Positions 28,352 to 33,421 of a stretch of 64,000 nucleotides of DNA are shown one piece after another. The translations under genes were made by a program, and so were the position numbers. Source of the DNA: Entomortierella parvispora E1425 (taxonomy: Eukaryota; Fungi; Mortierellomycota); assembly GCA_020891255.1 (NCBI GenBank), contig BQFW01000011.1:1984001-2048000 (forward strand). The letters are read 5' to 3'. The stretch's first letter is position 1. The number at the start of each line of letters is the position of its first letter. The notes below the pieces were generated by a model. That model had not been told where the DNA came from, searched no databases, and saw only the letters and a program-made list of their open reading frames with translations.

Positions 28352-29707
28352 ATGTCCGTTCACTACCATCCACAGCACTCGACTGCTGCCCCTCCATTAC
28401 CCTCGGTGTCGGCTTGGGCAACCGCTGCCACCGTCGCCAGCGCCACCACCACCGCCTCCGGCTCTTCGACGCCTGCATCCTTCTCGTCTCCTGAACAATG
28501 GCCTGGCTACACGCCTATTTGGGATTACGATCTGCATCCCGTGGCGCCCTGTGTGCCCGACTCTCGGCGGCCTCCCCGGCACTCCCATCCTGATCACATC
28601 CTCCATAGCGAGCCCATCGATCCCGCCTCTGTACAATACCGCCGTCGATCGACCCGCATCTCGTCCTCTTCGTCTTCCAACTCTTCGACCTCTTCACTTC
28701 AATTGCATTCGTCTCCCCTGCCAAAGAAACCACGGACGGTTGCAGCTGCAGCTGCGATCTCGGCAAAGTCGGGCCGTCGACCATTGCTTCTAAGACTTCT
28801 TCGGAAACCAGTATCTTCCTCTTCAACATCACCTTCCACACTTCTGTCTCCCATATCTTCTCTGCCGTCTCCACCCGCTTCTTCTCCCGAGTCTCATGAT
28901 CGTGATCCTAATACAACCACACAGCCACAACCACAACCACAGCCTCAATCGAAACCCCAGCATCAACACCCACACCAGCATTCGCATCATCGATACCATC
29001 ATTCATTGGATAGCTCAATGTCTCTTCAAGACCGATCGTCGTCGGGCCAAAGATTGAGAGCATCTCGTTTCAAAAACTCGGCGTCGTCCTTGGCTTCCTT
29101 GACGGAAGAAAGACAGCTCTCTCATACTTCCACCACCAATGAGATAACCGGGGACCAATCGCGCCCAGAAAATGGACGCCGGATACCTTCGTCGTCTCTT
29201 CCTCTTCATCCTGCCACCCCAGGAGGCCCCTCATCTTCCTCCAACTCTCCACGCCCATTGCTCTCCCAGCGACGACGGGGCGTGGCTGTTGCGGCCGTTT
29301 TCAATGATACCCCTAACCCCGCCGATTCAAAGGCGGCGCTCAGCTCAGAACAGCAGCAGCAGCAGCAGCAGCAACAGCGCTCTCCACTGGAAGAGCAACA
29401 ACTCCGCTGGCACCAAGATTGGCTCCGCCCCTCGGGCGCCATGCTCTCTCGCTTTCGGGATCGACCTGCACTTTTCAACTGTCCCAGATGTGGTGCCATC
29501 AAAGTTGTTTCGGAAACTCAATTTGTTCCAGGGGCAATGTCGTACTTGGTCGCGTTTGGGCTTTTGTTCTTGACCTTGGGCACTCTATCGTATATCCCCT
29601 TTCGAAAGGGTCATGAGGGTACCAAAGATTGTGTTCATTGGTGCCCAAAGTGCAACCAGAGGGTCGCCCGCTTCAGTCGAGCAAATGCCACATGGGAGTG
29701 GTTGTGA
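28352..29707 (+). CDS. LITAF-domain protein with long disordered N-terminus, intronless
   Basis: C-terminal FNCPRC..hydrophobic stretch..DCVHWCPKC zinc-knuckle pair typical of LITAF/SIMPLE. Confidence 0.88.
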   Translation: MSVHYHPQHSTAAPPLPSVSAWATAATVASATTTASGSSTPASFSSPEQWPGYTPIWDYDLHPVAPCVPDSRRPPRHSHPDHILHSEPIDPASVQYRRRSTRISSSSSSNSSTSSLQLHSSPLPKKPRTVAAAAAISAKSGRRPLLLRLLRKPVSSSSTSPSTLLSPISSLPSPPASSPESHDRDPNTTTQPQPQPQPQSKPQHQHPHQHSHHRYHHSLDSSMSLQDRSSSGQRLRASRFKNSASSLASLTEERQLSHTSTTNEITGDQSRPENGRRIPSSSLPLHPATPGGPSSSSNSPRPLLSQRRRGVAVAAVFNDTPNPADSKAALSSEQQQQQQQQQRSPLEEQQLRWHQDWLRPSGAMLSRFRDRPALFNCPRCGAIKVVSETQFVPGAMSYLVAFGLLFLTLGTLSYIPFRKGHEGTKDCVHWCPKCNQRVARFSRANATWEWL

Positions 29708-30673
29708 GAGCCTCACTAGTGTAAAAAAGAAAAAGTAATCGCATATCAAAGGCATGTACTCCTACATTGTAATAAAACCAGCGCTGAATAAACCTGAAAG
29801 CAAACAAACGACGGGCATATTTTATAAGAGGAAAGAGAATGCAGGAAAGAAGAAAGAAGTAAGAGAGAGGGAGAGAGGGGGAGAAACTAGAATAAAGAAA
29901 CAATAGGTGCATGCAATGACGAGTAAGAGGAAAAGGAAAAAGAGAAAAAAAGGGCAGAACGGCTTGAACGTGTGGTTGGGCCAGGGATTTGTTTTCAATA
30001 CTTGGTCGGAAAGATGTGGAGCAGCAAGATTAAGAAGGAGACAGGTCGGTTGAGAGCAAGAAACAGCACGGCAAAGAGAGTCAACAAGGCGAAAGAGGAA
30101 GATACAACAGTGCAACAACAAGGAACCTATCGGTTCTTCATCCAACAAGAGGCAAAAAGGACCGAACGCAGCGAAAGAAATTAACAGCAGGATCTATGTC
30201 ATCTCCATAGGGCCGCTGGTGCCATCCTGGTCAAACTCCGCATTCCAGTCGCGTCGATGTCGCTTCGGGTCCGGCGCCCTGAAAGATGCCGAGGAATCGT
30301 CTACCATTTGCATCTCATGGCTCGGTCCACCGACAGCTCCATCAAACCCGCTGAAATACTCGGGCCCCTCCGTGTCCATCCGCACTCTTTTGCTGAACTT
30401 TCGCTCAAAAGAAAGTGAAGACAACTGGCCTGGAAGGGAGTGGTGCTGTTGTGAATGATGTTGGTAAAGATATTCCTGTGGTCCTTGCGTCTGCTGCTGC
30501 TGCTCTTGCTGCTGCATCTGCTGCTGGTATGGTTGTAAAGGTGATGTTTGATGCTGTTGTTGACTTTGTTGGTACGTGTGAACTTGCTCCTGCGGCCATG
30601 GCTGTGGTATTGGCGTGGGGCGCTGATCTTCTTGGGGTATGCTGTTTTGGTGGCCAATCTTTCCGGTATCATA

Positions 30674-33421
30674 TCAAAAGTTTGTAAACAAGGACCGATA
30701 TGGGTCGCCCTGGCTTGCTTCATCGTCAGTCACCTCTGGGTACTTTTCAAAATTGCCGGTATCTCCAGGGTGCACGTAGGGTGGAACTATTGGCGCTGCT
30801 ACCGTCTTGTCCAAAAGCCCCTGCCAATCCACGCCCCGGAACCACTTGTGGTTCTTGATATCATCCGACCCATCCTATAATGAAAAGACCCCACAAATGA
30901 ATGTTAACAAGCGACTCTAACGGTGGAATTTGTGTCCATTGCCCGGTCAGAAGCCATCGATTACCTTCAAGTTGCCCAGTCGCTTTGTACGATCAGCAGT
31001 CAACAATTTCTTGATGAGATCTTTTGCAGTCGAGTCGAAATGTGGTGGGAAGTAAATGCGGCCCGCCAGAATCTTTTCGTAGATACCAAAAGGGTTGTCA
31101 TCGAAGAAGGGTGGATATCCCGCGAGCATCTCAAAGATCAAGATGCCTAGGGCCCACCAGTCCACTGCCTTTCCATGGCCTTTCGATTGAATGATCTCTG
31201 GTGCCAGATATTCTGGTGTGCCACACAACGTCCATGTTCTAAGCAACAACGTACGGATGCATGGACCAGTCAGATACTACATATTATGAAACAATTGGAG
31301 CAATTGCATACGACCGACGCTCGTATGGCAGTCCATGTCAAAAATCCAAGCTTACCTATCCTCAACCCTCTTTGCAAATCCGAAATCGGTAATTTTAACA
31401 TGCCCTGATGAATCCAAGAGCAAGTTTTCTGGCTTGAGATCGCGATAAATAATGTCCCGGGAATGAAGATACTCGATCGCAAGGACAATCTCTGCTGCAT
31501 AGAACCTTGTCATGTCATTCGTAAACCGGCCAGCTTTCCTGAGATGCGAGAAGAGCTCTCCTCCGATGACATACTCCAGTAACATGTACAGATTTCGCTC
31601 ATCCTGGAATGTTGTAAAACTGGGGGAGAAACAAAAAACATGTCAAAATTTGTTTGGCACAAGCCGAAAACAAGGAAGGAAAAAAAAGTCGAGAGCAAAT
31701 ATGGGTGAAGTACTTACAGGTTGACAATAAACGGAAAATGGACCTGGGAAAGAATTTGCTTTTCAGAATTGATGTGCTCCACTTGCTTCAGCCGCACAAC
31801 CTCTGTTTTCTTGAGCACCTTCATTGCATAGTACGAATGATCATGGCGGAACTTTGACAGATAAACCCGCCCAAAAGTACCCGTTCCTAAAAAAAAAAAA
31901 GTAAAACATGATAGTTTGGGTTAGTAAACCATTTTGCGTTGTCATGGTTGACTCTTTGATCCAGAAACAATACCCACTATTCCCGTCTACCTCTCTTTTC
32001 TCTCTTGTCTTCAACCTCCCTCTATCGCACCCAACTTTTATGGCCTCCTTCCTCTGGCCACCATCTTTGTCTTTTGGTGTAGCCAAATAGGGAAAGGAGA
32101 GAGAGAGTGGGCAATAGACAAATGTGAAAAGGGAGAGAGCAAGAAACGGGGGATGAGACTCGAAGGAAGAGGAGAAAGGAAGAAAGTGGGAAGGAGAGAC
32201 TTGAATGAAAGCGGTGCGTGTGTGTGCGTGTTATTGTTGTGGGAGTATGTTTCCTCCAAAGTCCCAGTTGATGTGGCACCATTGAACTGCACTCTGTTCG
32301 TAGCAACGGGGTACCATTGGACGATCTCCAGTAACAACCCGCCCTCGACTGATTCTTCCCGCTAGTGGACAACCATCGTCACCAGGAGCGGACTTGCGTT
32401 TCTTTTTTGTTTTTCCAGTGTCGGAGGGAAGAAATGCCCGCTTATTTTTTCGGTTGTGTCATGCTGGACGCGTGAACAAACAACGCTTGCTGACGATCTG
32501 TGGCCACTTGTGGTCTGCATGGGCAGAGAGCTAGCAAGTGCTCACAATCGACCGACCTGGAGAGAACCAGACCGTCCCCCCACCCCAGCCTCTCGGCGCA
32601 CAATCCTCACAATCTGCATCATCCTGCTCTAGTCCCAGCGCAACTCGGCACTGCATTCTTCCACAGAGCAGAAAAGGCGCGCTCGACGGTGCAAGTCCAG
32701 GGCCAACTTTGTCAGAGTGCTCATCGTCGAGATGGCTCACTGCTCTTGAACCATGGCTCTCTTTGGCTCAATTCCTGCTGCCGACACACTTATTCCTTTC
32801 CCTTTTACTCCCGCGCACACTCGCACCCACAAACACACAAACACACATACACACATACACACGCCACAGGCACATCTGGCACCACACGATTTTCTGTGTT
32901 TGTAAATACAAGCACCCTGGCATCTTGGGCCAGAGCATTATGAGATGTGACTGCAGCATATCTCGTCCCTGCCTCCTTTGCTCTGGCCTTCTCACCCAAG
33001 AATCCCGTGAGTAATGATGGATTTGTGGGGGGTGGGGTTGGACGCTCCTCCCTCTTCTCTTTCTTCGCTCTCCTCTCCGTGCTGAATAGCCCCATAGACT
33101 CTTTGCATGCTTACCAAGTGTTTCCATAAGTTCAAAGTCAGAGAGGCCATATTGCGGTTGGGCGTCATAGCATGGACTCTTGAGTGGATAGATAAGCTGG
33201 CCTTGCGAAGTGTAGTAGGGCTGGTCATTGGGGCTGGGATCGTGTGGATGGGTGCTTGTCTGGGCCTGGTCCATCTGATGCTGGTGTTGGAGCCTGTACT
33301 TTTCCTGTAGACGAAGTTGGTGTTCCTGGTATTGTTCGCTGCGCAGGGTCGCCTCATCCATCGGACTGGCGCTGGCCATGGCCATTCCGCCTGGCTCAAA
33401 GTTGCCGTGTCCGTTGCTCAT
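30674..33421 (-). CDS. pkaC: cAMP-dependent protein kinase catalytic subunit (PKA-C/PRKX-like), 5 exons
   Basis: LG|[69 protein letters not shown]; ends [10 protein letters not shown] (TGA 30676-30674); intron 1 is about 1.2 kb. Confidence 0.95.

Follow-up and report, generated by a model that had tools for sequence, protein, structure and literature searches.

How could a ribosome pass from a kinase into the open frame that lies beyond its stop codon? The question is raised by the gene for the catalytic subunit of cAMP-dependent protein kinase (PKA-C) in a 64,000-nucleotide stretch of the fungus Entomortierella parvispora E1425 (contig BQFW01000011.1, positions 1,984,001 to 2,048,000), which as a whole is called the window below. 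On its minus strand the kinase frame closes with FTNF and a TGA codon, and the same frame then runs on through 159 sense codons to a TAG, exactly as a sequence-only reading of the window had described it, in coordinates as well as in the peptide quoted. The elements concerned are the following.

30674..30676, minus strand: first stop TGA, directly after FTNF, proposed to be leaky
30197..30673, minus strand: in-frame extension of 159 sense codons, called the tail here
30194..30196, minus strand: second stop TAG, end of the extension

The comparison described below suggests that this is probably a PKA-C gene with programmed UGA readthrough that gives rise to an extended kinase. Three mechanisms had been offered in the sequence-only reading, namely readthrough, adenosine-to-inosine (A-to-I) editing and a recent nonsense change; readthrough is the only one of them to survive, and we infer decoding of the stop as the route into the tail.

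The open frame in the window says little when taken alone. The tail was stop-free in 0.16-0.18% of mononucleotide shuffles of its own bases, which makes so long an open run about three times likelier than the earlier estimate of about 5e-4. With about 20 genes per window, the open run in a single genome goes weakly beyond chance. Over the tail region of the window, stops number 2 and 5 in the other two sense frames and 4-6 in the antisense frames. A tail-less paralog from Podila verticillata served as the negative control: there, a TGA is followed by an open run of 107 or 127 codons (L009:9129-9450 and L010:4233-4615), which is junk (poly-Cys, poly-Phe) and is frameshifted between two strains, and because of such a run ORF (open reading frame) length alone is misleading. 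That a single genome can hold an open run of over 100 codons in the junk 3' untranslated region (3'UTR) of this paralog is consistent with the view that the tail in the window is likewise untranslated, being open by chance or CAG-repeat composition, or conserved as RNA or DNA. The same view gains something from database searches, in which the tail showed no relatives outside the family: it gave 0 matches among 1.84 billion representative proteins, scores of at most 0.70, which is chance level, in Atlas, and on Pfam only a sub-threshold TFIIA low-complexity match. A profile search with the tail was swamped by Q-rich words and returned only Actinomortierella ambigua ORFs and unrelated Q-rich proteins, and the non-Q half of P0048, an NCBI model that includes the tail, found no match.

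Loci in other species were found via a search with the exon-1 reading frame, which led to Mortierellaceae PKA-C proteins whose clusters were listed and whose contigs were fetched. A locus was counted as orthologous if it had the convergent LITAF-like neighbour of the window or the tail in common with it; orthology is accordingly based on synteny and on the tail itself, the kinase tree being too shallow to resolve it. The orthologous set comprises 11 loci from at least eight genera, one of them Entomortierella-like, all Mortierellaceae: Mortierella alpina (L001), Dissophora globulifera (L002), Mortierella sp. AD010 (L003), Actinomortierella ambigua (L005), Linnemannia elongata (L014/L015), Lobosporangium transversale (L017), Gamsiella multidivaricata (L018) and Podila spp. 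(L019-L021). A partial twelfth member, L022, comes from a close relative of the window's organism and was the only contig found when metagenome contigs were scanned for the invariant block around the stop.

In all 11 orthologous loci the kinase frame reaches FxNF-TGA and then stays open for a further 150-217 codons. Frame 0 is free of stops in every one of them, and the other five frames carry stops, with the sole exception of one reverse frame of L020. An antisense gene was considered and rejected, the reverse frames having stops in nearly all loci. The first stop is TGA in 11 of 11 loci, and also in L022, while the second varies among TAA, TAG and TGA from species to species. A group of tail-less paralogs, which adjoins COX7a and RPL23 (L004, L006, L009/L010), was compared together with cDNA contigs (L007/L008, L011-L013) as a set of nine; six of the nine, from at least four species, have TAG-A, TAA-A or TGA-A as their stop, followed by unrelated 3' sequence. 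Judging from these loci, the arrangement of TGA plus tail is ancestral to the sampled Mortierellaceae. TGA is the leakiest stop codon, and readthrough is favoured because the first stop is always TGA whereas the second can be any of the three and the tail-less paralogs use TAA-A, TAG-A or TGA-A.

The tail also changes in the manner of a coding sequence. Between genera, identity is about 90% in the kinase and 31-43% in the tail, with saturated synonymous sites. Within the Podila trio, the ratio of nonsynonymous to synonymous rates (dN/dS) of the tails is 0.19-0.44, with a synonymous excess at p=4.5e-4, 0.042 and 1.2e-6, and over the 105 codons shared by the window and L022 the proportions of synonymous and nonsynonymous differences are 0.213 and 0.051, respectively (ratio 0.24, p=4e-4). 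The indels in the tail, of 3, 3 and 6 nucleotides (nt) in the Podila trio and of 21 and 6 nt between the window and L022, are all multiples of three; in the 450 nt past the second stop of the Podila trio, 8 of 26 gap runs are, as expected by chance. Against X4, a sequencing run of related-strain DNA, the indels listed (12 of 19) are confined to the 3'UTR (30032-30178) and an intron. The region between the two stops thus has the evolution of a protein-coding sequence in the PKA frame. An untranslated tail is hardly credible in the face of a frame that is open in 11 of 11 loci at a per-locus chance of about 0.002 or less, and of a synonymous excess, indels of 3n and motifs kept in frame despite saturated synonymous divergence; moreover, a single transition turns CAA or CAG into a stop, and neutral poly-Q tracts would soon gain stops. 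The comparison with related species that the sequence-only reading had proposed, for a conserved stop together with coding conservation downstream, is hence positive across the 11 loci, and the scattered frameshifts or stops in relatives that it had named as contrary signs are absent from them. Its suggestion of a recent nonsense change is refuted by the TGA in all 11 loci and L022 and by the purifying selection on the tails.

Conservation in the tail is concentrated in short segments on either side of a low-complexity stretch.

30635..30673, minus strand: motif A, YDTGKIGHQNSIP, directly 3' of the stop; Y1, D2, G4, K5 and I6 invariant (n=11)
30443..30595, minus strand: Q/H/P-rich low-complexity stretch with CAG/CAA runs in frame; length differs in every genus
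30374..30409, minus strand: motif B, FERKFSKRVRMD, R-x-x-S followed by KRxR; a Ser resembling a basophilic kinase site beside a patch resembling a nuclear localisation signal (NLS)
30245..30274, minus strand: motif C, PDPKRHRRDW, with NLS-like K-R-[RH]-[RK]; K137 and R138 invariant, P134 in at least 90%
30197..30211, minus strand: conserved C-terminus PMEMT; M156 and E157 invariant

Motif A reads Y-D-[AT]-G-K-I in the orthologs. Within what the sequence-only reading called a prion-like tail, the Q/H-rich stretch is the least conserved part, and read assemblies break there. Motif B, with R91, K95 and R96 invariant and S94 and R98 in at least 90% of the sequences, occurs in frame 0 in 11 of 11 loci, at codon 80-124, and R-x-x-S precedes this first basic patch in 10 of 11 species. 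Motif C, of the pattern P-x-x-K-R-[RH]-[RK], always lies in frame 0 as well, 42-68 codons past motif B, and from there 19-45 codons lead to the end, spacings that differ in nearly every genus. Every tail ends with [PA]-M-E-[LMI]-(x) before the second stop, in the forms MEMT, MELA, MEMA, MELT, MELS, MEIA or MEL according to species; none of the orthologous tails ends in an SKL-like tripeptide of a type 1 peroxisomal targeting signal (PTS1). AlphaFold, run with the alignment of 11 sequences, predicted a disordered tail (mean predicted local distance difference test score, pLDDT, 51) with no secondary structure. In sum, purifying selection acts on a tail that is predicted to be disordered and that contains short linear motifs. 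Its two basic patches resemble classical monopartite nuclear localisation signals, and the tail may direct the kinase to the nucleus; the sequence-only reading's phrase "possibly nuclear-targeted" seems reasonable because nothing in the tail is better conserved than these patches. The R-x-x-S of motif B fits the preference of PKA or other basophilic kinases, which suggests phosphoregulation.

If the tail is protein, it might still be translated separately from the kinase, by termination-reinitiation, from a non-AUG start such as the invariant AUU at codon +6, or from an internal transcript, and would then be a small disordered nuclear protein. Separate genes of 129-189 amino acids (aa) are indeed annotated here in several genomes, and the context GGA AAG AUU G is invariant and Kozak-like, the AUU having A at -3 and G or A at +4. 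One report documents isoforms from non-AUG initiation in fungi (PMC7214817). We nevertheless regard separate translation as quite unlikely. The first in-frame ATG lies at codon 24-102 in an unconserved position, the annotated starts differ in every species, and motif A precedes every in-frame ATG. Because no in-frame ATG lies upstream of it, motif A would be translatable only by passing the stop, and with initiation at AUU the conserved YDAGK codons before it would go unused. Separate translation would also leave unexplained why a leaky TGA is constant here when the paralogs have TAA or TAG-A. A downstream ORF from the conserved AUG in the +1 frame was tried as another candidate and rejected, being unconserved and 24-152 codons long. 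The AUG itself (UGA-U-AUG, 30670-30672, minus strand) is present in all orthologs since TAT GA is invariant, and in the window it opens a +1-frame ORF of 123 codons.

Whether the stop is present in the mature message depends on the splicing of the gene, the model of which was rebuilt and checked. It has five exons on the minus strand and a coding sequence of 1215 nt, with a single stop, for 404 aa.

33115..33421, minus strand: exon 1, from Met to ...ETL-G, Q-rich N-terminal region; donor GTAAGC at 33114
31718..31886, minus strand: exon 2, glycine loop GTGTFGRV...IVNL; preceded by intron 1, which ends TTTTAG
31356..31619, minus strand: exon 3, kinase core; Pfam Pkinase E=2.6e-29
30965..31238, minus strand: exon 4, activation segment to ...LGNLK; Pfam Pkinase E=3.4e-21
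30677..30874, minus strand (from 30674 with the stop): exon 5, AGC C-terminal tail with the FxxF end (FTNF)

The region of exon 1 has 61-85% identity to the N-termini of Mortierellaceae PKA-C proteins, and the 404-aa product has 89-93% identity to Mortierellaceae proteins named cAMP-dependent protein kinase in UniRef. The two marks of the PKA-C class are both present in the gene product, namely a protein kinase domain and an FxxF end of the C-terminal tail. Each of the four introns ends in a YAG acceptor, the donors being GTAAGC, GTAAGT, GTAAGC and GTAATC. Intron 1 (31887-33114, minus strand) is 1228 nt long and the other three are 90-117 nt; since orthologous genes span about 2.1 to 4.5 kb, intron 1 is large and variable across the family.

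The most direct view of the message comes from the Logan cDNA contig L016, derived from one RNA-seq run of L. elongata, in which the four introns are removed and the TGA is retained. It stays collinear with the genome over the first 176 nt of the tail and ends at the CAG repeat. A search for sequencing runs listed no RNA run for the window's organism and, with any kind admitted, 24 runs, four of which were assembled onto the locus. Two of them (X4 and X16) proved to be DNA of relatives, with introns, and one (X15) gave read-sized contigs of uncertain kind; the fourth, the soil metatranscriptome X21, yielded one 189-nt contig that spans the stop unspliced and another that spans the end of the tail, at a depth of 2-3, which makes it weak support. 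The main mRNA therefore carries kinase, stop and tail in one frame, as seen for the mature mRNA of one species. The possibility named at the outset by the sequence-only reading, that the tail is a spliced exon of another isoform, does not agree with L016, which is unspliced there, and its remark that no consensus intron removes the stop was borne out by inspection of the splice sites of the locus.

A minor splice isoform could still remove the stop, either through a 75-nt in-frame intron (GAG|GTG...GGAAAG|ATT) or through AAG|ATT used as an alternative acceptor of intron 4. The kinase would then continue directly into the tail at IGHQ..., and the nucleotides frozen after the stop would be branch-site and acceptor signals. 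The 75-nt interval in the window is in frame, starts with GT and ends with AG, both routes are compatible in phase, TTTTGAT resembles the TTGAC/CTGAC branch sites of the real introns of the gene and lies 15 nt before the AG, and the NCBI model P0048 from M. polycephala has exactly the 75-nt junction. That model is, however, one of four fused NCBI models, each of which skips the stop by a different ad hoc junction. Such disagreement suggests artefacts of the predictor, and the four were rejected as evidence because their junctions are mutually inconsistent. L016 is fully spliced elsewhere and not at the stop, and no joint that removes the stop was seen among the contigs of the four runs, the depth for X21 being 2-3. 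The candidate donors (GTGACT, GTGCAG, GTGGTG and GTCGAC) vary as a Val codon does and lack the GTAAG of the real donors, and the candidate acceptor AAG stands in a purine-rich context, whereas the real acceptors are all YAG after pyrimidines. Splicing would, in addition, cost the product its FxxF motif or its entire AGC tail, parts that PKA requires. Such an isoform thus appears unlikely. The fused models themselves are 542-614 aa long and come from Mortierella sp. AD011 (P0035), Entomortierella chlamydospora (P0038), M. polycephala (P0048) and Actinomortierella wolfii (P0055).

The same cDNA bears on the idea that the UGA is recoded, by insertion of selenocysteine or by RNA editing of UGA to UGG. 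Either would require what is in fact observed, a TGA in every ortholog. The A-to-I editing known from fungi favours an A preceded by U, and the A of this stop is preceded by G; L016 reads TGA after splicing, so that the editing proposed in the sequence-only reading is unsupported. A search of 29600-30900 gave no match to the selenocysteine insertion sequence (SECIS), even at E<=10, or to any other Rfam family, and no Mortierellomycotina are on the published list of selenocysteine-using fungi (bioRxiv 10.1101/314781). Given this search and this list, the selenocysteine route is unlikely, and a redox rationale for such a residue after FxxF is lacking. Taken together, recoding by one or the other means is very improbable.

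Readthrough would be expected to leave its mark on the nucleotides around the stop, and these are conserved beyond what the peptide demands.

30653..30682, minus strand: near-invariant block AAC TTT TGA TAT GAT ACC GGA AAG ATT GGC, third positions included

AAC TTT TGA TAT is found in 11 of 11 loci, as is GGA AAG ATT, and the general form of the block is AAC TTT TGA TAT GAY RCM GGA AAG ATT. The Tyr codon at -8 is TAC in 10 of 11 loci and that at +1 is TAT in all 11, the Gly codon at -11 is mostly GGC and that at +4 always GGA, codons further upstream vary freely, and those of exon 5 show free synonymous variation among the orthologs. According to transcriptome-wide work in yeast, positions -6 to +9 determine termination efficiency (PMC8087045). 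The frozen block includes these positions, and readthrough is favoured also because synonymous sites are frozen around the stop where termination is controlled in yeast. Scored by the yeast rules, the context is permissive in part: UGA and A at +5 are the best options and U at +4 is the second best.

Several observations at the same site speak against readthrough. U at -1 is inhibitory by the yeast rules, and +4 is U rather than C. The sequence-only reading had pointed out that UGA-UAU is not the classic leaky UGA-CUAG, and this holds: neither UGA-CUAG nor UAG-CARYYA is present in UGA UAU GAY RCM GGA AAG AUU. With RNAalifold, the search for conserved RNA structure 3' of the stop, such as the stem-loop about 8 nt downstream of some leaky stops, turned up nothing beyond a stem of 5 bp at -0.7 kcal/mol, which shows no covariation. 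The invariant block also looks like a branch site plus AG (TTGAT...AAG), and a rare splice isoform is possible given that there is one cDNA contig. Finally, with all 18 nt after the stop frozen, conservation of codons and conservation of RNA are indistinguishable there. We do not place readthrough higher than probable because splicing or reinitiation could make use of the same frozen bases as a signal. Should readthrough be real, its cis signal would be unlike those described, and the invariant nucleotides from -6 to +21 are the likely candidate for it. As to the stem (30658-30680, minus strand), the invariant CUUUU, in which the U of UGA is included, can pair with the invariant GAAAG 12 nt downstream, and the arms never vary.

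Under readthrough, most ribosomes would stop at the UGA after FTNF and release the ordinary 404-aa kinase ending in FxxF-COOH, and a fraction would insert an amino acid at the UGA and continue through 159 more codons. In other organisms, Trp, Cys or Arg is inserted by a near-cognate tRNA at a UGA that is read through. The predicted product, FTNF-X-YDTGKIG..., would resemble the complete AGC hydrophobic motif FxxF-X-Y and would have, in its predicted disordered tail, a Q/H-rich spacer, R-x-x-S-KRxR, PKR[RH]R and a PMEx end. In Akt, S6K, PKC and PRK2-PIF the hydrophobic motif is FxxF-[S/T/D/E]-[Y/F], while PKA members end in FxxF-COOH. The F-x-N-F-X-Y-D of the read-through form would match the former in spacing and in the aromatic residue after the acceptor, although the acceptor residue is normally Ser or Thr and the read-through PKA-C would hold whatever the UGA inserts. 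The likeness of FxxF-stop-Y to FxxF[S/T]Y, which had been noticed from the window alone, is found in every ortholog, the Tyr being TAT in 11 of 11, and its meaning is a matter of interpretation. We tentatively put forward, as a possibility with less than even prospects, that the UGA is a translational switch at the phospho-acceptor position of an AGC kinase, set by an undescribed cis element (AAC UUU UGA UAU GAY ... GGA AAG AUU), and that it yields a nuclear PKA which might be regulated by autophosphorylation. Were this so, an entire fungal family would have conserved an alternative to the diffusion/PKI-export logic known from animal PKA.

Conserved readthrough genes of insects and mammals (PMC5100048, PMC3840789, PMC4132726, MDH1x PMC5133446, VDRx PMC5868278) are supported by evidence of the same kind, that is, a conserved and mostly UGA stop together with a coding region behind it. 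Their extensions are often disordered, as is predicted for the PKA-C tail, but the cases are enriched for UGA-C, UGA-CUAG or 3' stem-loops, whereas PKA-C has UGA-UAU-GAY without a supported structure. In Drosophila, readthrough extensions are reported, in a ribosome-profiling paper, to carry localisation signals in some cases. The present locus differs from these further in its early-diverging fungal family, in being PKA-C, and in the long extension of 150-217 aa that starts at the AGC hydrophobic motif. Among fungi, the peroxisomal readthrough isoforms of glycolytic and other enzymes (PMC4207609) are alike in that nuclear genes with a UGA gain a targeting signal and dual localisation. Those extensions are short, follow UGA CUA and end in a PTS1, while the PKA-C tail is ten times longer, ends in PMEMT or PMELA and has nuclear-like motifs. 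An earlier study in Ustilago maydis is also said to deal with readthrough-derived peroxisomal isoforms. Within the cAMP pathway, readthrough of yeast PDE2, a cAMP phosphodiesterase, reportedly adds a short extension that destabilises the enzyme; it too is a case from the cAMP/PKA pathway of a fungus, but here the kinase itself would be the target, with purifying selection acting on the extension across genera, and we know of no deep conservation of the PDE2 extension. In the literature, no paper was found that describes readthrough for PKA or for Mortierella. What could take the present case beyond the known kind of readthrough is its unusual context, together with the place of the stop within the hydrophobic motif.

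FxxF-COOH is the textbook end of PKA-C, and an extended isoform throughout a family would, if confirmed, be new to fungal cAMP signalling. It would belong to the very few deeply conserved cases of fungal readthrough unrelated to peroxisomal targeting, and would define a leaky-stop context unlike the known ones. Public annotation of the locus is inconsistent, with models truncated at the stop, a separate "hypothetical protein", or the four fusions via invented introns. Mortierella alpina and Linnemannia elongata are culturable, which makes the prediction directly testable, and both are transformable.

Downstream of the PKA-C gene, in convergent orientation, lies the neighbour used in assigning orthology (28352-29707, plus strand), a 451-aa S/P/Q-rich ORF whose C-terminus has a CxxC...CxxC pattern reminiscent of a LITAF zinc ribbon. 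In L003, L005 and L017-L021 the same convergent position is taken by a zf-LITAF-like gene, and this conserved synteny helped to separate orthologs from paralogs. On the side of the paralogs, the Logan cDNA contig L007 (SRR6256855) has, at 1-639, an ORF of 212 codons upstream of the kinase ORF.

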